Shown here piece after piece: positions 1 to 13,149 of a stretch of 64,000 nucleotides of DNA. Every line of letters starts with the position of its first letter. The stretch's first letter is position 1. The DNA comes from Bugula neritina (Eukaryota > Animalia > Bryozoa). The DNA lies in assembly GCA_964035545.1 (NCBI GenBank), contig OZ037768.1:11130741-11194740 (forward strand), read 5' to 3'. The translations under genes and the position numbers were made by a program. The notes under the pieces were generated by a model. It had not been told where the DNA came from and did not search any database. It saw only the letters and a list, made by a program, of their open reading frames with translations.

Positions 1-1
1 T

Positions 2-967
2 ATCCTTGCTTTAGCAGCTGTTGATTTGTCTGTATGCAGCATATCAATGCCAATTTGGCTGTTCACAACTTTCACTGAAGATCACGGCTCAGAGCTGCTG
101 TGCAAAGCTGACAAATTTATAAACTTTTTCTCAATTCCGATGTCAGCCGGCATTCTTCTAACCATAGCAATTGACAGATTCTTATTAGTATTCTTTGTGA
201 AAGTGAAAATCATAACAAGATATAAGGCTAAGTTGATAATATTCTTTCTAGCGCTAGGGTGCATTGCTATTGCTATTCCACAGACTCTCTCCTTTACCAC
301 GTTGTACAAACTTGATGAAGAGCTGGTAGCAGCCATATGCCAGGGCACTATAACATGCAACACACTGAAATGTCAGCACACCAGCGAGTACGTGTCCCGG
401 GATGTCTGGTTTTACATGTGGAGAAGTCTGATTATAGCCTTCCTCGTCATGTCGGTTATCTTCACGAGTGTTTACACGTCAATATTTGCCAAAGTCTATA
501 GAATTCACCGTAAAATGAGTCGCTACACAAACTCCGTCCACGAAAAGAGACGGGAGATACCGATGCAGACGGATCATGTGACATTCTCGAGCTCAGAACC
601 TTCCTCCGATAGCAAATCGATATCCAACCGAAACTCCGTCTTAGGAACCAACAACAATCGTCCTAAGAAACAAAACCTGCCTCATTTGCAGACTGCTCGC
701 ATACTGTTCTTGGTGACATTCTGCTTCATTGTAGCCTATGCTCCACTTGTTTTGATGATGTTTCTGGGAAGTTGTGAGAGCAAAGAAGAAGAAGATCTTG
801 AAACTCCGTGTCGCAGAAATGACTACCGAAGATTTCTGTGGCATTTTTATTTTCTGCACCACATAGTAAATCCAATAATTTATTCATTTATGAACCCAAG
901 ATTCAGAGATGCTCTGCGTAAGTGCATGAGTTCCAATGTCTGCTGTAAAGATGGCGGAGGCAGTTGA
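2..967 (+). CDS. Class A (rhodopsin-like) GPCR, peptide-receptor-like, paralog 1; 5'-truncated by the window edge
   Basis: Frame is open from position 2 (ILALAAVDLSVCSISMP = TM2). Shows the TM3 Cys, IAIDRF, TM6 FIVAYAP, TM7 NPIIYSFMNPRFR and helix 8. First stop is TGA 965-967; a probable readthrough extension runs to TGA 1046-1048 (see findings). Confidence 0.93.
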   Translation: MLALAAVDLSVCSISMPIWLFTTFTEDHGSELLCKADKFINFFSIPMSAGILLTIAIDRFLLVFFVKVKIITRYKAKLIIFFLALGCIAIAIPQTLSFTTLYKLDEELVAAICQGTITCNTLKCQHTSEYVSRDVWFYMWRSLIIAFLVMSVIFTSVYTSIFAKVYRIHRKMSRYTNSVHEKRREIPMQTDHVTFSSSEPSSDSKSISNRNSVLGTNNNRPKKQNLPHLQTARILFLVTFCFIVAYAPLVLMMFLGSCESKEEEDLETPCRRNDYRRFLWHFYFLHHIVNPIIYSFMNPRFRDALRKCMSSNVCCKDGGGS

Positions 968-1122
968 CAGATGGCGGGTACTGGAGAGAACCACAGTGGC
1001 AGCAAGACAACATCAACATCCATGCAGATTACCAACACCCCGGTGTGAAGTATTTCATTATAAACTATATACATGCCAATACGTCATGCCCATGTACTTA
1101 TTGTGTTCTTTCCAGTACCTGC
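965..1122 (+). promoter_or_regulatory. Putative stop-codon readthrough signal of GPCR paralog 1 (UGA-CAG plus 3' stem 974-991/1105-1122)
   Basis: GCGGGTACTGGAGAGAAC (974-991) pairs contiguously with GTTCTTTCCAGTACCTGC (1105-1122): 16 Watson-Crick and 2 G-U pairs. The in-frame extension is QMAGTGENHSGSKTTSTSMQITNTPV*. Confidence 0.75.
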
Positions 1123-2059
1123 ATATGTTTCTTTATCTTTTCTTTTTATTTAACAACTTAACACATTAAACAAAATTGACGAGAATGTTGCAATACACAT
1201 CGAAGTAATTATGCATTTCTATTAGAATAAACCAGAGTTAGGCTTATATTAAGTTACATTAGTACAAGTGCTTGGTGCTATAATCCTATTGTAATCACGT
1301 TTAGGTTATATTAGCTTATTTGAAGTAGAATATGTAATATGTAATGTTATATATTATCCATTATATATATTATATATATAGCAATAAGAACTGTTTAGTG
1401 TTCAGTTTTTATTTCACACATCAATATTTCAATATAATTGTCATAAACTTATTTATTATTATGAGCAGAAACTGTAGTGGGAAAATAAAACTTTATTTAA
1501 CAACTCGGAATCTAATTTTGATTTTCTAACATCTTTTGTTGTAAAAACATGCTAATACATATATTTGCAGAATTTTGCTATTAGTCATTCTAACTCATAT
1601 ATATAATATAATTGACTTAATAAGTTTTATAACGGCTAAATTAAAACCTCTTCTGTAAGAGTTTAGATCAGTGCTAAAAAATTTGGTAGAAAGTTTCTAC
1701 TTTATGCTAAAAGTCTGTTTCTGCCTGAAGTAGGGCTTGGTGTCTCTCACCCTACATGTCTAAATCAGATATGTGATGACATGTTTACAGGCTAGTTTAA
1801 AGGAGTTGGTGATAATAATAATGTTATACACTCTTACAGTAAACATGAATAAACTAAAAAATGCATTTTCAACCTTTTTAACTGAAAATCTGTTCAAAAT
1901 TTATACAAACTTGGCAAAATGCAGCTAGCAGAAACAACATAATAACATTATAAATGTGGTTAGCATGCATATAAATCATGATAAATATTACGGTTTGTTT
2001 AAATGATATTAATAATATTATTATTTATTAATAGATTAACATGCATTAATAATTTTACT

Positions 2060-2206
2060 AAAAAGTAATGTTATATATATATGGACAAAACCGTTCAACT
2101 TTTACATATGCAATCCTATACTTGATAAATAATTGCCCCCACCGGGATTCAAACCGCAGACCTCCGGCTTGCAAGCAGGAGCGCTAACCAATCACACCAC
2201 AGGGGC
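2060..2206 (-). mobile_element. tRNA-derived SINE or tRNA pseudogene (Ala-like head)
   Basis: Minus strand 2206-2134 reads GCCCCTGTGGTGTGATTGGTTAGCGCTCCTGCTTGCAAGCCGGAGGTCTGCGGTTTGAATCCCGGTGGGGGCA. It has an A-box and a B-box variant (GGTTTGAATCC) but imperfect stems and a 6-nt anticodon loop. The 3' boundary is approximate. Confidence 0.6.
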
Positions 2207-4963
2207 CACTGGGTAAACTAAACAAGCTGCACTAGTTAATTCATAGTTAGACAGGAGCTGGTGATTGCATGCGTTGTATTTGAAATACATTGATGGCATG
2301 GATATAATCACTAGTTAATAAAACACAAATTAAAAGATGCATTACCTGAATATTTCTGATGAGTTATTCACATAGCTGGGGAGACAATTCTAAAACTTGC
2401 CAACATTTTCAGAGTTTAAACAAAACTAATATCTCAAGTTTTGTATTTTATGAAATTAATATTTAAATATCTGCAATAGCCAAAGTAGATGTCAGATAAA
2501 GTAGTTTATTTTGTGTGTAAATAAGGTAGGCTTACTAACTTTTCGGAGATATGAACAAAAAAGATACCATTGACTACTAGGAGTTGCTTCCTTCTGAATG
2601 TTACGCCCTTCATTTATATCAACATTAGGGGAACTTTAAGTGAATGAAACCCAATTTCTAACACATGCGGCAAATTCAAAGAGTAGATATATTACCTCTG
2701 TAAGCAACCAGCAGCTGAAAAAAAGTGCAGTCAGACTGCATAACTTTGAGAAGTTGTAGTTGTTTTCTCATTTATCCTAATGAATCCTAGTGAATGATAA
2801 GTAAGTTAACTTATATGGTTTGTACGTGAGAATTAAAGCCCCAAAACACTTGTTTTTATATAAAAAAAGACTCAAAACTTTAAATCCTATTTACCTTTTA
2901 AAGCGAAAAAAGAATGTGAATAGATATCTTAAATGCAAAAACACAAAAATAATTTCTAACTTTGGTAACTAATAAATATGCACACATGTGCAAACCAAAA
3001 CTATTTTTTAGTTCGCCCTCATAAAAACTTATATAGACAACAATGGGGTGAGGCTTTATGCCACCAACACGCAAGTTTTTAAAAATATAAGTCAAACAGC
3101 AAATTAAATGATTATCATTGTTTACAATGACTAGTTGTAATTTAAAACATTCACCAAAAGTATAATTTAATTAAATCGCTTGAAAAGCCTTATGCTATGA
3201 TACTATAAGCTGTATAGAAAACTATGAGAAACAACCTTTCACTAGTACTATTCAAGATACCTGTTTGCTAGATTCTACATGAGTAGAGAATAAGCACATA
3301 AACAAATGAATACCTATAATACTAGGTATGCACTAAAATAGATAATACCCTAAGAATATAAACAATGCTCAGTTATTTATAGACATATTAAGATAATCTT
3401 TAGTAATTTGTGGTTATAACATCTGACTTGACTCTTTTGTGAAGCTGGGTACGGTAGGAGATGGAATGGCAGTTTCCTTTGACAGAGAAACTTGTATAAC
3501 AGAAGAAACCTGTATAACAGAATCTTCATTTTATGCAATATATTTTACAGCTTACATAAAAACTGGTTTCTTCAAAAAGCAATAGCAATGCTATTTTGAA
3601 CAAAGTTTTTCATTGGTGAAGAGTATGCTAAGATTTGTATTGGCATGTAAAAGAAGTTAATAGATTCTCATATTAATTAGCACCTTAAAGGGATCATATT
3701 ATAACAAGCCAATCTGCTATTATCACTATGATGTGTCATAGTTTTCAAGTCAGAAAGCTGGTGAGTTATGGAGAGGCAACTTCTAATTATAGTTCAATTA
3801 TACAAAATGTTACTGCTAATATCACTGTAAGCAGCATCTTATGTTGCTGATTCATATGGAGATAAAATCTATAACAGTCCTTTATCATGTGTGCTGCCTT
3901 TTCTTTCTTCTTCCTTTTGTTAAAACCTATAAATATATAATTACTATAAACCTCAAACATTCTTGCAAACTCTAGTAGTAGTTTGTTGTAGTTGAAGATC
4001 AACTCTTTAGATAAACTGGCTGAACAATCGGAGCAATCAGAATAAAGTAAATGGTGCAATAAGAAATCTCAGTACAACTATTCATATGTGTATAATAAAC
4101 TTGGGTACAATCTGGGTACAAATATTATAGGGCTACCATAGACTGTCTATGATTTTTAAGAAAAATCTTCTTAAGGCTACGAATTATTCATAGATAAAAT
4201 GTGTTGCTTAATTTAGCTAACTTGTTTATTTATATATGACATTTTTCTGTCATGTCATGACAGGATAAAAATTATTTCCAGTATATATCACTTGCATATT
4301 TTTCTCACATAAATTTGTCTAGGGTCAATTACCTATTAAGTAGCAACCCTTTTAAAGTACAGCTGGGTTCTGAAACTTGGACTGCCTCCAAGTTAAGATT
4401 GCTATCTTTCATAGAGATAAAAGCTAGCCTAACTTTTGTTGTAGACGCGAAGATTAAATCTTGCCATTTAGATTTTCAGCTATGCATATTTTATCTGATA
4501 TGCTGTATATCAAACAAGACTGACAATTCAAAAGAAAACTAGGATATATTTATAGCAAATGAGCGCCTTTAAACAGATCTCATGTGCACAACTGCATGTA
4601 TTCTTTTAACAATCTGAACAAAAAATAAGTGATAAATTACTCTAAGCATGTGAGACCAAAAAGCACTAAACAAAAAATATAACATCATAAATAAAACTGG
4701 CTACTTGCTTCAAAAACAGAGAGTTTTTTGTAAATTTTGTCACCCCAAAAGATTCCACTTGAACATTATAAGCAGCCTAGTCTATGTCATTATGCAAATT
4801 TTATTACCGTTTAAATGTTGCATAATGTAAATGCTTTGATATGGATAATATAATTGTATTATTTGCTTTCACAATAAACTCAGTAAAGGGTATTATTTTC
4901 AACAAGTATTTCCATAACTGTTACTAGCTATTATATTAGTTTTAGGTTTTGTGCCAGTTTTGA

Positions 4964-5139
<176 letters not shown>

Positions 5140-7049
5140 GTAAAGAAAATAATGTTTTTGTAGCATAAGAATTTTTCGACAATTTGGACTGTATAATAAA
5201 AATTCAAAGAAGCAGGGTTGCTGTATAATATTTGTAGATTTTATTTAATGAGTACCTTCTTGACACTCTCATTAAACATATTGATTTCATAGACAAAACA
5301 AAGTACAGATTGCAGCAACACAACTCAATCATTAAATAATTCACAGACAAGCATGTCATGTGGCACTATAACATGCTTGATAAAGTTCTCAACACATGTG
5401 CTTTTATTCAACACCTTATGTTGGTTATATAAACAGAAATGGCTGTTACATAACATTTAATATATTGCCATAAGCGTTACATATAGCAGCTTATTACTTA
5501 AAATGTTCTAGTTTTAAGCAACCACAAATACTCACAAATATCATATCAGACTTGAAGTTTTTTATTGATTTATATAAAATATGGATTAAATACGAGATTA
5601 AAAATTTGTCCATGCACAAATATTTATAAAGACTACACGGGTATTTAATGCTTAGTCTATGAACTAGCTCATACCGATTCTTTATAGTCCAATCAACAGA
5701 TTAGGACTTTGAGATCAAGAAGTGGCTGTATTAACCATCAGTAGAAGCTAAACATGCTTTTTTAAAACTAGCAGACTTTTTCAAGGTGACTAATTAATAT
5801 TACCATGCTTTCTGATCTTCTGATTTATTATAATTTGATTGTTTGATAAATTATAACAGAAATACAAATATAATTGAAGAGAACTTTTTCTGCTTATAAT
5901 AGAATGATAAATTGCACATATTAAAGAATTTGTAATGTTATGATGTTATTTGAGCCTACTTTTTAGTGTTTCCACAATACTGGGTTGTTTGAAGTGGGAG
6001 TTGTCTACTATATTGAGAAAAAAGCCTGTTGAGAATTCTGATCTCTTTAGCTCCTGATAGTGACCATAGATGTATGAGAATCATTCAGTGCTTATTATGC
6101 ATATGCTAAAAAACAGTTCTTTATCGATATTTTATTTATATATTCATTATAAATATGGTAACTGGTATCTTACATATGACAGTGTATTATCAGTCATTTA
6201 GCTCCAGCTGGTCAGATTTACTGGCCTTATGAAGTGCCACACATAAACACATTTTAACTCAAATAACTTGTTTGAGTCTAAACAACCCAGTGGAATTTAA
6301 AATAGTCTTAAGATGAGTAAAACTGGTAAATACATTTTTTTAAAGCTGTTTTCTAGCATTAACCTCTGAGAGAGAAATAGTAAATCGCATATAAGCCAAT
6401 TAGGTCTAGCTTCAAATGAACACCTTTATAAGTTAATGTAACGGACATAATCTGCTACAAACACAAACCGATACCACAGGCTCCAACTTTGCTGCTGATA
6501 TTATTGAAGGTCAGTTCTAAATTGTTAATGACCACAGTCTATATTTAATAGGTACTACAAAAAATAGAATAAAATGGGCAGATTGCATATTGATGAAAGA
6601 GTATAGGCTATTAATCAACAAACTGACATTGTCTACCAGGTTAAAATTAAGGCATATGCAAAAAAAGCTGTTCAGCAGGTCATACACAATGTGTTATAAA
6701 TAAAACATGGTGTTGGGTAAAAGCAGCTTAAAGCACACATATACTTTGCTTTTGAAATTCCAGAAAAGGTCAACTTTGGAGCTTTACTAATTTATATACA
6801 CTTAGTTGAAATTCCTATCATACCCAAGCTGACATACTATGAGATATGGGGAATATATCTTGATATATAAACTATGGTGGTTGGCTCCACATGCATGCAT
6901 TATTAGTAAGTGCAGCACGTGTAACTACATGTAACTAATAAGAAAACATTGTGATATTCATTTGTAGATTGGAGCTGTAACCAATAAGTTGGTGAGAGTC
7001 ACATGCAGCAAGATAGAAATGTGATTGTTGCTATTTGCTTCTTCCAAAG

Positions 7050-10000
7050 GTAAGAAAAGGCACTTTTATGATTATTAGTATTTTAGTACTTAATATTTAG
7101 TTAAATTTGTAATAGGCATTAATTTTGTAGCTACAGATCTAGTTAATAGTAATAGTGTTTTTATAACAACAAAATAATTTACATATTTTATTAAATGTTT
7201 ACCTGGTTGAGCTACAGGTTCATGGTCTTGGTTTTTATTTAAATGCTAAATTAAAATAATCAGTCATTACGACGGATAAATACTTTTATAAAAAAACATT
7301 AATAAATAATTGTATTAAATTGGCTTTGGTGATTATTTACAGTCTGACTTGCAGCCCAAATTGGAATTTATTATGCCTTGTTTAAAGGTTGATAATTGTT
7401 GCTTAAAATATCTATATTATAGCTCGATGCAAAAAACATGTCCATTAGTAAAATGATATTTTCGAATTCTTTACTATAATTTTGCCAAGTAATTGTTCTA
7501 CTGCTTTACCACCTACACAGTAATACTTTATTGAATTTAATAGATATTTTTTACTGTTGAGAGAGAGTCATGCAATTAGAATTTGGGAACTTGGACAATT
7601 TAGTTACTAAAAACTGTAACACTGATTCAATCACATGCATAATATTGTGTGGGTGTGTTTATGATTTTACCACACATTACTAAAGGTTTAATTAAAATGC
7701 AAATACAATATTTTTTAATGGTAGGTTTGTAACATTAACAAAAACAATGTGTTTCTAAGGGCAGTCGTACTGACTAATTGTACATAGTTTTGGCATCTAA
7801 ACTTTTTTGTTTGGCTCGAGTGTGAACCATCTAATTTATAAGATGTATGCTGGAAAGACTTCCATTAGCTGAATTAAGATTTGTCTACTGGCAAAACTTT
7901 GTCAATGTATGTAAGTGTGCAGCATAATATCCCCTAGCTTATGTAAGGTATTTTATTTAATTAATTAAATAATATAAATATAACTAAGTAGGCAAATACA
8001 TGACAGTATTCGAGTGGGAACATATTTCCAGTCATGCTTGTGCATATCATGTAGGAATCATGCCAGCTATTAGTGTTGCAAAAATATAGTATTGCTGCTA
8101 AATTCATATAAATCTGTAACAGGGGTAATATCGGGTTTGGAATGTTAGCTGCTATGTGAAGGCTTGATCTGGATATTCATGACGCTTATTTTTATGATAC
8201 TTGCATGCCTGCAATAAATGTGACTGGATTTTACTGATGCTAGTAATGCAATAGTGTAAATACTAGGGCCGTGCTATTTACTGTGCAACAATAATACTGG
8301 GTGAATATCTTTCAACCCTCACGCATTAGCAGCTTTTCTCTATCGCAACTCCAAGCTCAGTTTGACTAAATTTATAGTTCCATAATAAATAGGCACAGTA
8401 TGGAAGTCAACTACTCCATAATATCACTATAATATCCAGAATTTTTGAAATGTTGAATACGTTTTTTAGTTTACTGCACACCTCACTGATTTAGGTTTAG
8501 CTAAAACAGCATGCCACTATAATAGAGTTATTTATAACTGCAGTTGAGTACCAACTTATAAAAAATACTTAGCTGTATGCCAAACAAATATTCTTTAACC
8601 TACTTAAAGACTACCTTATAGAAAATTTGCCCAAAAACAACTGCAAGATCATCAGTTGAACAATTCCTTAAATGATGCAATTGACATTCGAATATGAACA
8701 CAACTAGCACGGGTTTTAATATGCTAACCAAAAGCTATACTATATTGTAATGTAATTTTTAAAGTTCAAACCGCTGTTCCTTGAAAATACACCATTGAAT
8801 TTATTAAATATATTTTATTATAAAATAGCAGTCATAAACTGACATTAGCATAGCATATTTCAAAAGTTTTTAAAATCTTTTTAGAAAACAGCCAGTTAAT
8901 CTAGCAACTGTCGAACTAAAAATAGTTAGTCTGGTTAAAAAGGAATTAAAACTGACTGTCCTAGCATAGATTTACTAATTTGATTGACTGTTGTGTACAG
9001 CAGTTACAGCTACAGTGACGGTATTTGTAGCATTTAGCTCAATAGTTCTTGCAGCTCAACACGGTTACAACTTGTATACACCTGTGCCTTTTTGTTGAAC
9101 AAAATTGTTAAAATCATTAGTAAGATTAAAATGTTCCCCAACAATAGCTGTTGAAAGTTTAGGAATTAAAACCAACACTTCTATTATTGCTATATAAAAC
9201 CTGAGTATAATATTTTCGAATTGCTTAGTCATAGTCTCTAAAAAATATATTTGTCTAATGCAACAGTGTTACCGCTATATTCCAAAATTGATATAATAAT
9301 ACAAATACTATTAAAGTATTTTGATTGAGCATTATGTTGAAATTTAATGTAATTTATTAGCATGGCATGGCCATAGAAGGAATTATTATTGATGTGTTAG
9401 TATAATGGTAAAAACAGCAATTTATTGGCAACTATATATAACTCTCTGGACTTAGAACCTAGAAATGTGCCAACAATTTTCCTGGCCTGGGTATAATATT
9501 TAATGCCTGAGTCAACTCTTCGAAAGTAATACAACCTGGATAAATGCTTTGTATGCATTCCTGGCTATTATTTGGATTGGTCATTACGTAGGTTCCCATG
9601 CTGACATGCAATATTATTATCTGACTCAAAAATTTTTTATGGGTTATTGGCTTTTTTTCACATATGTTTAGTTTAATATCTACAGCCAAATAGCCAGATG
9701 TCCGTTCTGCCACTAGCTCATACTTTGGAGGGGGGGGGGGGGAGAGTGCACTAGATGCCCAGTATACTTATAGCGCTGCAATTAAACTAGCCACTTGTTT
9801 CGAGTGAGTGAATGCTATCTTTGATGTGTACCAGTCATATAAGGACTATATTAAAGGTTCAAAACAGAACCTATGACTTTAGTGCTAAAAACTAGTTGGA
9901 CAATGTTGATGGCTTTGAACTTGCAACCCTACAGTTAGGATCTCAAATGCCTCTCTTAACATCAAATTTGATGCCAGGAGAGCAGAGCTGATGTGCTTTC

Positions 10001-10692
10001 CTAAACTTGATATGATTAGTGACTCTTTATTTTGATTTTCATAAGATTGATTGATAAAAACAAGATAGCATTTTGATTTGTAAGAACATGTAGCTCTAGG
10101 AATAATTGCTGTCAAATACAAACTGCAGTATAATGCTTCCCCAAGTAATTAAAGAACCCACAAGATGCATTTTCATATTTAATTACCAGATAATGAGATA
10201 GCTAAACTAATATAGCAAATGTCACCAATATCTATATTATGCTGTTATAGGCTAACATACATCTGCAACAGAATGCAGTACTCCCTATGTATATGCAGCA
10301 ATTTTTGAATAGATATGATTAAAATTACAAAAATATGTACATCTATGTCCCTACTGCTGAATTAATTGATTTGTAAGCATTTAAGACAGTCACAGAGGAC
10401 TTCTTTGCGTATCAATATTAAAGTTCAATGCAACTGTTAGCTAAAAGAGTCCCTGAACTAAGCTGCTCTGTATATAATTATATTCTTGGAATTATTACCA
10501 AATTGAACAAATAAAATTGTACTATCCAGAGTCAATAAGTAAGACAGGGAGTTTGTGGGTTTATTCTGTAAACTAAAATGTCACACCCTTGTACTATTAA
10601 TCTATAAAAATATAGCTACCTATCATTAAAAAGAAATTTCGTTGTCATATTTTATTAATTATCTTATCAGTAATTTATATTTCTCCTTGTAG
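7050..10692 (+). other. Possible 5'-UTR intron of GPCR paralog 2
   Basis: Donor-like AAG|GTAAGA at 7050 and a pyrimidine-rich acceptor TTTCTCCTTGTAG ending at 10692, 68 nt before the ATG. Pairing of these two sites is an inference. Confidence 0.35.
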
Positions 10693-10760
10693 AAATCAAG
10701 AGAATAAGACAGCTGACTGAATAATTTTGGAATTTTTGACACTCAGCTGCTTCATGAGAA

Positions 10761-12068
10761 ATGGAATCAAACTTGACCAACACCGTAAACTATACCTCCT
10801 CGTACAGTGCGCCGATGCTACCTGTTTGCACAGAAAATATTCAGAAAATTATTTGCGACTTCATCTATACTGGTGTACAGAAACCCGTAGACATAAAAGA
10901 TTACAAACAGTCAGTGTGGATATGGGCATCTTTTGGATTCTTTACGCCGTTATGTTTATTTGGAATTATTGGCAACATAATAACAATTATTATGTTTTCC
11001 AAATACATAAAGAAGACAACTACTTCGGTTTTTATTGTTGCTCTAGCCTTTGTTGACTTGCTAGTGTGCAGCATCTCTATGCCAATCCAGTTGTTTGTTA
11101 CTCTCAATGGGTTCCACCAGTTTGACCCTATTTGTCGAATAGAGAAATTTGTCACCTTTCTAGCATGTCCGCTTTCAGCAGGAATCTTGGCTGTAATAGC
11201 AATAGATCGATTTCTACTCATATTTGTTGCTCGTACTGACATAGTGACTAAATTCAGAGCAAAGATTATAATTGCTGTAGTAACATGCATATGCTTGGGA
11301 CTAGCAATTTTTTACACGCTCGCTCATACCACTTTGAGACACATATCTAAAAAAGACCTTGAAAAAGTTTGTGATGGAGAATTTTTTTGCAACATAAAAA
11401 GATGTGATGCCACTAGCTTTCTCTTCGAAAAGCCCCATGAAGTGGCGTTTGACTTGCTGGAAGTTACGCAATACACATTCATTGCAATAGTTGTCATCTT
11501 TATTGTGCTCTACACGTTGATTTTTGTGAGAGTTTATCGAATTCACAAGAAAATGACTTTGTGGAAGTCTACCAGGCATGTTACAAAATCAAGTCAGAAA
11601 GTCTATGAAGATTCGAACACATTCACAACGGAATATCCAGCCACAAATGGAAATGCTACAGAAAATGGTAAAATCGGAGCAAACACTCTAGAAGGAACAA
11701 GCCAGGACAACCACGAAAGAGAAGTTGGTGCAGCTGAAGAGGCTAAACTGATGAACACACCCAAAGAGCCACCAAAGATTAAGAAAGAAAAGATCAAAAA
11801 GAGACGACCACCTCATCTGCAAACAGCCCTCACTCTCTTTCTGGTAACTCTCACGTTCATCATTGCCTATGCTCCAATGATTCTGATCACAATGCTAAGA
11901 GTTTGTGAGGATAACACGATGTGCCCGGATAATGGCTACAAAAAGTTCTTCTACTACTTTTACTTTCTCAACCACGTAACAAACCCTATAATTTACTCAT
12001 TCATGAATCCCAGGTTTAAGGACGCTGTCAAGGTATTCTTCAACAAGTTCTCGTGCGCCAGTAGCTGA
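10761..12068 (+). CDS. Class A (rhodopsin-like) GPCR, peptide-receptor-like, paralog 2 (435 aa)
   Basis: N-terminal NLT/NYT sequons, TM1 GIIGN, TM2 LAFVDLLV, IAIDRF, long ICL3, TM6 FIIAYAP and NPIIYSFMNPRFK; clearly paralogous to 2-967. First stop is TGA 12066-12068; a probable readthrough extension runs to TAA 12141-12143. Confidence 0.95.
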   Translation: MESNLTNTVNYTSSYSAPMLPVCTENIQKIICDFIYTGVQKPVDIKDYKQSVWIWASFGFFTPLCLFGIIGNIITIIMFSKYIKKTTTSVFIVALAFVDLLVCSISMPIQLFVTLNGFHQFDPICRIEKFVTFLACPLSAGILAVIAIDRFLLIFVARTDIVTKFRAKIIIAVVTCICLGLAIFYTLAHTTLRHISKKDLEKVCDGEFFCNIKRCDATSFLFEKPHEVAFDLLEVTQYTFIAIVVIFIVLYTLIFVRVYRIHKKMTLWKSTRHVTKSSQKVYEDSNTFTTEYPATNGNATENGKIGANTLEGTSQDNHEREVGAAEEAKLMNTPKEPPKIKKEKIKKRRPPHLQTALTLFLVTLTFIIAYAPMILITMLRVCEDNTMCPDNGYKKFFYYFYFLNHVTNPIIYSFMNPRFKDAVKVFFNKFSCASS

Positions 12069-12204
12069 CGTGAGGCAGGGACAGCATCTGGAGGTTATAC
12101 TACTACAATTACATCAGTGCAAATAGTGAGCACTCAGCTGTAAATATGCTATCATTACCCAGTAAATTGATACCAGTAGTTGCCTAGATGTTGTACCCTG
12201 TCTT
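12066..12204 (+). promoter_or_regulatory. Putative stop-codon readthrough signal of GPCR paralog 2 (UGA-CGU plus 3' stem 12072-12091/12184-12204)
   Basis: GAGGCAGGGACAGCATCTGG pairs with CTAGATGTTGTACCCTGTCTT: 20 bp including 4 G-U pairs, with one bulged A at 12195. The in-frame extension is REAGTASGGYTTTITSVQIVSTQL*. Confidence 0.75.
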
Positions 12205-13149
12205 CTTGCTCCTTTTTTTCTATTTTCTTCATGTTTTACTTTGTTCTTTTAATGTTTATTGGTTTAGGACATTTCTCAGCATTTAAACCTACATGTATGT
12301 ACATCTAACAGTTTTCTAAACATATTTTCCATAAATATATAAACTTATTGCTAATATATTAAGACAAAGGTGTGGAGGTTAATAATAACAGCTTTATACT
12401 CAACCACAATTATATATATAATATATTGCTCCTTGCTACGTTGTGCTAATAATGGGATTTGATTAGCTCTGATTATTTTTATGTATTCCTAGATTATGTT
12501 ATGTTACAACATTGTCATTTATGTTATAATATAATTATTTTTATAATTTTTGCTTCTGAACAAAACAATAAATTGGGAAACTAATTATCATTTGAAGTAT
12601 CACTAAAAAAATCAATTTCACATAAAACTGTTACATGAAATGACTCAATAGTGAATATACTGCAGCAGGCCAAGATATGCAGCGCCATGTTATGTACATA
12701 CCAGCAATTGATAAAATGAAATTAGAATAGAGAGAAAACCTTATTTGCATTTTAATTTTTCTAAGAAGTTTAAAATTTGACATTTTATAATTTTCAGACA
12801 CAATATTATAAATACTGATAGAGAAATAGTAACAGGCATTTCATATAAAAATATAACACCGAATTATGAAAATAATGACTGGAGTCTGTATAATTTAGAC
12901 AGGGTAGTTAAAAGTGAGCAAGAAAATGTCTTTAATAAAGAAGATACAAGACAAAATTTTATCAACAGCCTAAATAATAGCTTTGTCATTGAATGGTCTC
13001 ACCCATGAATTATCGTAATGCACAAATGCAATCAAAATCAAATGATCAAATTAAACTTTAGATAAATAATATCAACACTGTCTTATGGGAGCTGTATTAT
13101 ATCGCCCCCTACTCAACTACCATTGCGTGTATAGAAACTGTGCTGTGGA

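Follow-up and report, generated by a model that had tools for sequence, protein, structure and literature searches.

Why do two neighboring receptor genes both end at a UGA codon in a context known to be leaky, and why does the reading frame of each remain open for a similar distance beyond that codon? The window considered here, a 64,000-nucleotide stretch of the Bugula neritina genome (contig OZ037768.1 of assembly GCA_964035545.1), harbors two intronless class A G-protein-coupled receptor (GPCR) genes, referred to below as gene 1 and gene 2, which share a strand, are separated by about 10 kb and show 45% identity. We favor, with a probability of roughly 0.8, the explanation that both genes undergo programmed UGA readthrough, stimulated by RNA structure and alphavirus-like in its architecture, which would add a Thr/Ser-rich tail to the receptor. 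Most likely, each receptor would thus be made in a short and a long version through occasional readthrough of its first stop. The evidence consists of a conserved stop codon, a coding signature behind it, a covarying stem in the mRNA and transcripts that run uninterrupted across the region.

The UGA codon and the frame beyond it

Both window genes match Pfam 7tm_1 (PF00001), with E values of 1e-29 and 7e-27, and they are the only close members of their family in the 216-Mb assembly. A protein search returned 15 family members at 37-95% identity, 2 of which are named, both from Watersipora subatra (Bryozoa). The set used for comparison comprised 13 distinct genes, namely the two window genes and the DNA of 11 relatives from other bryozoan assemblies and transcriptomes; since one contig (L019) stops 9 nt past the TGA, counts that concern the region behind the stop rest on 12 genes.

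The first stop is TGA in every one of the 13 genes, while the second stops are divided among TGA (2), TAA (6) and TAG (4), so that TGA occupies the first position in 13/13 cases vs 2/12 for the second (Fisher p = 2e-5). The nucleotide that follows is C in 10 of 13 genes. Among the contexts recognized as leaky, which are UGA-CUAG, UGA-CAA-UYA and UGA-CGG (PMC3159437, PMC4132726), TGA-CTAG occurs three times in the set, TGA-CAA-TYA three times and TGA-CGG once. The codon before the UGA encodes Ser (AGY) in 11/13 genes and His in the other two; gene callers take the UGA as the end of the coding sequence, which explains why Ser is the C-terminal residue in 11 of the 13 proteins predicted to end there. 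Beyond the UGA, frame 0 is open for 19-31 codons, a near-constant length, with no stop inside the extension in any of the 12 genes whose contig continues past the first stop.

An earlier note on this DNA, made from the letters alone, had drawn attention to several of these features in the two window genes, and translation bears them out: both open reading frames (ORFs) end in Ser-UGA-C, and they stay open for 26 and 24 codons before a second stop (Table 1). The ten identities that it had counted between the two extensions were recovered as well (A-G-T, followed by T-T-x-T-S-x-Q-I-x-x-T), and the A-G-T codons indeed differ at third positions only (GCG GGT ACT vs GCA GGG ACA). Its remark that the extension is better conserved than the residues just before the stop also holds, the latter being poorly conserved. 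It had further proposed that other paralogs and orthologs be collected, as has been done above, that dN/dS be computed on the post-UGA frame, and that transcripts be searched for editing or splicing at the UGA.

A covarying stem and a tail with a coding signature

Minimum free energy (MFE) folds together with duplex searches identified a long-range stem in 11/13 genes. Its 5' arm, (G)CGGGUAC..., lies over the A-G-T codons, whereas its 3' arm, ...YUGUUGUACCC, is located 94-316 nt past the UGA, beyond the second stop. The arms of gene 1 are 18 nt long and 89% complementary. The fold z-scores of the two window genes are -4.2 and -2.9, with 0/200 shuffles folding as well in each case, and duplex energies range from -25 to -43 kcal/mol vs shuffle means of -19 to -26. 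RNAalifold, applied to an alignment (A3) in which all rows finish together at the 3' arm, returned a single consensus helix of 13 bp, which starts exactly 8 nt after the UGA, leaves the UGA itself unpaired, and contains compensatory changes on both sides in 7 of its 13 pairs. Swapping arms between genes gave a mean of -17.7 kcal/mol for non-cognate combinations vs -26.7 for cognate ones, and the arms of gene 1 and gene 2 do not cross-pair (-12.8 and -15.9 vs -35.2 and -27.1 kcal/mol with their own partners). The claim that a long stem stands just 3' of the UGA in both window genes has therefore been upheld by fold z-scores, shuffles and covariation.

The coding signature of the extension was evaluated by codon-aligned Nei-Gojobori counts on the extension and the receptor body in 8 pairs of genes. 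Third positions account for 43 of 66 extension differences over five independent pairs (p = 1.3e-7), and the ratio of nonsynonymous to synonymous differences per site (pN/pS) in the extension ranges from 0.07 to 0.41, which shows purifying selection on the post-UGA frame. The pair L011-L013 illustrates the pattern: amino acid identity is 58% in the body and 92% in the extension, differences at codon positions 1, 2 and 3 number 1, 1 and 11, and pN/pS is 0.07 (pS 0.56, pN 0.04). The corresponding values are 73% and 96%, 1/0/5 and 0.07 for L013-L030; 76% and 75%, 6/3/14 and 0.25 for L015-L021; and 50% and 61%, 6/4/14 and 0.41 for L008-L012. Between gene 1 and its copy in assembly GCA_010799875.2 (L007), the extension has undergone 3 synonymous and 2 nonsynonymous changes. 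Compared with the coding sequence, pN/pS of the extension is equal or lower in 5 of the 8 pairs and slightly higher in 3 (gene 1-L007, L015-L021 and L008-L012). Indels in the compared pairs are whole codons (26 vs 24, 24 vs 23 and 28 vs 31), and the G+C content of the extension is 0.45-0.61 vs 0.26-0.43 in the 3' untranslated region (UTR) that follows.

The extensions are also built on a common plan, in which 2 variable codons come first, then A-G-T/A and a middle part rich in Thr and Ser; most members end in T-x-L/V/F. In two relatives a similar tail occurs without any stop before it. The Watersipora protein P0009 carries it in one uninterrupted ORF that ends S-T-R-L, and the segment SATKSTS in this tail is identical to part of the post-stop extension of L014; P0012 likewise has a tail without a stop and ends V-Q-L. 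Neither the UGA nor the stem survives in the P0009 copy, whose tail is therefore constitutive. In the DNA of this ortholog (L020:2740-3100), the final ~105 nt of coding sequence, tail included, recur in tandem at least 2 more times past the stop.

Taken together, the position-3 bias, pN/pS, whole-codon indels, base composition and constitutive tails show that selection acts on the encoded peptide, beyond the RNA alone. This bears on the first alternative to be weighed, namely that the extension is not translated at all and that its conservation reflects a 3'-UTR RNA element, acting in stability, localization or microRNA binding, with the open frame being incidental. In favor of this view, selection on the stem is evident, and the A-G-T motif would be explained by the 5' arm. 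An RNA element does not, however, predict that substitutions should be concentrated at third positions, that the part of the loop away from both arms should be conserved at the amino acid level, that indels in the compared pairs should keep to whole codons with frame 0 always open, or that the tail should be constitutive in P0009 and P0012, and we consider this explanation very unlikely.

Transcripts across the stop and what they say of other explanations

RNA evidence is available for gene 2, in the form of assembled contigs from three runs in three studies of a relative ~96% identical. The contigs represent RNA because they carry a spliced 5' leader joined at ~10703: upstream of ...ccttgtagAAATCAAG, X1, X2 and X6 have another exon in place of the genomic sequence, which the DNA-like run X17 retains. 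From 10703 they extend to 12494-12696, without joints, across the UGA, the extension and the 3' arm of the stem. In the editing and splicing check, the A of the TGA is retained in the contigs L004-L006, which come from the same transcript assemblies, and A>G and T>C differences between contigs and genome are equally frequent (14 each), with no hyper-editing signature in the gene 2 transcript contigs.

These contigs are relevant to a second alternative, according to which A-to-I editing converts the UGA to UGG (Trp) in some transcripts and the long stem is a substrate for ADAR. A long double-stranded stem does adjoin the stop, and roughly half of the MFE folds take the G-A-C around the stop codon into the helix. 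In the consensus, on the other hand, the helix begins 8 nt past the stop and the UGA is unpaired. A 5' G neighbor is the least favored ADAR context, which makes G-A-C a poor site. The contigs keep A and show no A>G excess, a result with which low-level editing would still be compatible, and the leaky-stop hexamers after the UGA would be unnecessary if the codon were edited. Editing accordingly appears highly improbable to us.

The same architecture could in principle mark a new family of selenoproteins, in which the UGA encodes selenocysteine and the stem is a Sec redefinition element. Selenoprotein genes share part of the signature found here, with an in-frame UGA kept across deep paralogs and conserved coding sequence downstream, and a passage in PMC3159437 mentions a stem ~6 nt past the UGA in some selenoprotein mRNAs. 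Nevertheless, an Rfam scan of 12 loci (42 kb, including 3' UTRs) at E<=10 found no selenocysteine insertion sequence (SECIS). The UGA-less proteins P0009 and P0012 show no Cys at this site, the segment being absent or unalignable in the two sequences on which this result is based; no redox motif surrounds the UGA; and CUAG, CAA-UYA and CGG are motifs of readthrough. The chance that the codon specifies selenocysteine is, in our estimate, extremely small. Finally, a rare alternative splice, with a micro-intron that removes the UGA and joins receptor to tail, could draw on the GT-AG-like dinucleotides near both stops (in gene 2, AAG/GTATTC upstream and GAG/GCA just after the stop), but it has a probability close to negligible, given that the transcript contigs contain zero joints, that the candidate introns, read by eye, are 30-55 nt long, differ in phase between the two genes and result in other frames, and that such a splice would not account for a strictly conserved UGA, its leaky context or the fixed in-frame distance to the tail.

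The coordinates of the receptor genes and of the elements discussed are collected in Table 1. The solved receptors nearest to the family are aminergic, orexin and neuropeptide Y receptors, matched at E ~1e-12 over partial stretches, and on the strength of these partial matches we regard the receptors as an orphan lineage within class A. Two further receptors were set aside as lying outside it: a third genomic match (L003), which is a distant multi-exon GPCR, and a 23%-identical receptor (L032), which ends in TAA and is without the cassette. A second GPCR family (proteins P0016-P0022), 23-25% identical, also ends abruptly just past helix 8 (...LFCGR or ...LFCRR). The gene 1 copy in GCA_010799875.2, an assembly that we take to be from Bugula neritina, encodes a 98% identical protein, and its pS relative to gene 1 (window 1-1130) is ~0.17, above expectation within one species; this suggests sibling or cryptic species, the window genome belonging to a close but distinct Bugula-like lineage. 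A weak tRNA-like Rfam match at L002:3912-3984 on the minus strand, corresponding to ~2134-2206 of the window (29.4 bits vs a gathering threshold of 29), was rejected after ARAGORN, run on the window, did not confirm it.

Table 1. Positions in the window of the two receptor genes, their stops, extensions and stem arms
Feature	Position	Strand	Remarks
Gene 1, class A (7tm_1) GPCR coding sequence, 3' part	1..964	+	ATG 278 nt before window start, at L002:1501
Gene 1, first stop UGA	965..967	+	After Ser AGT, before C (AGT TGA CAG)
Gene 1, in-frame extension	968..1045	+	26 codons, Thr/Ser-rich, C-terminal T-P-V
Gene 1, stem 5' arm	974..991	+	Consensus core 976-988, starts 8 nt after UGA, overlaps A-G-T codons
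Gene 1, second stop TGA	1046..1048	+	Within loop of long-range stem
Gene 1, stem 3' arm	1105..1122	+	3' UTR, beyond second stop
Gene 2, splice acceptor of 5'-UTR intron	10690..10703	+	Contigs have different upstream exon from ~10703
Gene 2, whole class A GPCR coding sequence	10761..12065	+	Intronless, 435 aa
Gene 2, first stop UGA	12066..12068	+	After Ser AGC, before C (AGC TGA CGT)
Gene 2, in-frame extension	12069..12140	+	24 codons, C-terminal T-Q-L
Gene 2, stem 5' arm	12072..12091	+	Consensus core 12077-12089
Gene 2, second stop TAA	12141..12143	+	
Gene 2, stem 3' arm	12184..12204	+	3' UTR; spanned by transcript contigs

A proposed translational switch and its place among known systems

Structure-stimulated readthrough of the UGA could proceed as follows: (i) on arrival of the ribosome at the UGA, a Ser (AGY) codon would occupy the P site and, in 10/13 genes, the stop would be followed by C, which is a weak termination context; (ii) the stem, with its 13-bp consensus core and up to ~25 bp in single genes, would then sit at the mRNA entry channel, 8 nt downstream, and favor decoding of the UGA by a near-cognate tRNA over recognition by release factor, as in the signals of alphaviruses and type II plant viruses; (iii) the ribosome would melt the stem, translate 19-31 more codons and terminate at the second stop within the loop. 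The short receptor would end a few residues past helix 8, and the long one would carry the Thr/Ser-rich tail. A class I PDZ-ligand-like end, S/T-x-hydrophobic, is present in 8 of 14 distinct tails, including the TPV and TQL of the window genes, with a TQM tail as one further, borderline case. The readthrough isoform may hence be the only form of the receptor that is available for binding to a PDZ scaffold or for phosphorylation leading to arrestin docking.

Several observations sit less comfortably with programmed readthrough: (i) three members have UGA-U and not UGA-C; (ii) the L018 type (L018, L029 and L031; P0015 type) has Ser-UGA-CUAG and an open extension of 19 codons but lacks the conserved stem as well as the common tail motif, and may represent either a variant that relies on CUAG only or a cassette in decay; (iii) in L017 the stem is weak and the tail is shortened; (iv) the independence of most homolog sequences was judged from divergence alone; (v) the A-G-T codons overlap the 5' arm, and part of the amino acid conservation may be due to RNA constraint; (vi) minor edited or spliced forms would not show in assembled contigs, which moreover come from the ~96%-identical relative and from gene 2; and (vii) translation past the UGA is inferred from sequence, and so are the identity of the inserted amino acid, how efficient readthrough would be and what the tail does.

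The further suggestion of the earlier note, that a recoding module dependent on RNA structure was ancestral and survived the duplication, is supported by the conserved UGA, purifying selection on the extension, the covarying stem and the contiguous mRNA. The distribution of the module indicates that it is older than the tandem pair itself and was already present before members now sharing just 40-45% identity diverged. More speculatively, and with a good deal of doubt, one can imagine that the family owes its only cytoplasmic tail, with its cluster of Thr/Ser phospho-acceptors and its PDZ ligand, to recoding alone. In that case, the stem-controlled UGA would act as a translational switch of great age, in place before the 40-45%-identical members separated, and would set the fraction of receptor available for scaffolding or desensitization; in an animal that is sessile and ectothermic, temperature or the supply of tRNA might tune this switch. 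Tuning of this kind has recently been argued for the alphavirus opal codon (PMC13105319).

Stop codon readthrough itself is well known, and its occurrence in paralogous GPCRs has a mammalian precedent in OPRK1 and OPRL1. Our literature search found no paper on readthrough in bryozoans or Bugula. To our knowledge, well-supported cases of structure-stimulated readthrough in cellular genes are few, and almost all of them come from insects and mammals. The bryozoan cassette would accordingly be a lophotrochozoan example. It also offers a natural mutational series of the stem, with covariation over 13 variants, several stop contexts and loops of ~70-280 nt; a functional hypothesis, in which the receptor tail and its PDZ ligand exist solely in the readthrough isoform; and a lesson for annotation, in that automatic gene calling ends every one of these receptors at its UGA.

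In architecture, the closest counterparts are the signals of alphaviruses and type II plant viruses (Firth et al. 2011, PMC3159437), which share with the bryozoan genes UGA-C, an 8-nt spacer, a stem of at least 12 bp, a loop of ~100 nt or longer and compensatory substitutions. In Venezuelan equine encephalitis virus, UGA-C is followed by a spacer of 8-9 nt and a stem of 11-12 bp that encloses a 101-nt loop, and mutation of the stem lowers readthrough ~10-fold (PMC3159437). The bryozoan signals differ in belonging to a cellular family and in having a readthrough ORF of only 19-31 codons, because of which the second stop falls in the loop and the 3' arm is untranslated.

With regard to the genes concerned, the likeness is greatest to mammalian OPRK1 and OPRL1 (Loughran et al. 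2014, PMC4132726), which are paralogous class A GPCRs in which UGA readthrough gives rise to a C-terminally extended isoform of the kind predicted here for the bryozoan receptors. Three bryozoan members even share their UGA-CUAG context. The bryozoan receptor family is, however, unrelated to these two, with no close match among solved receptors, and most of its members combine a non-CUAG context with a conserved long-range stem; descriptions of the mammalian signal do not include such a stem.

The gene headcase is a Drosophila readthrough gene with a 3' structure, and its stop is UAA. Along with kelch, a second Drosophila gene of this kind, which is named in PMC3159437, it resembles the bryozoan receptors in being a cellular gene with a conserved coding signature after the stop and a stimulatory 3' stem-loop. 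Those, however, are single orthologous genes, whereas the bryozoan cassette spans a family whose paralogs are 40-45% identical. The peroxisomal extensions of LDHB and MDH1 (PMC4359377, PMC4207609) provide a parallel on the side of the product, as in both situations a short extension apparently serves a C-terminal short linear motif. In LDHB and MDH1 this motif is a peroxisomal targeting signal (PTS1), while in the bryozoan tails it is the PDZ-ligand-like T-x-V/L/F-COOH that follows a Thr/Ser cluster, its function being putative. Among all these systems, the bryozoan case stands out by its family-wide age and by the clean covariation of its stem.

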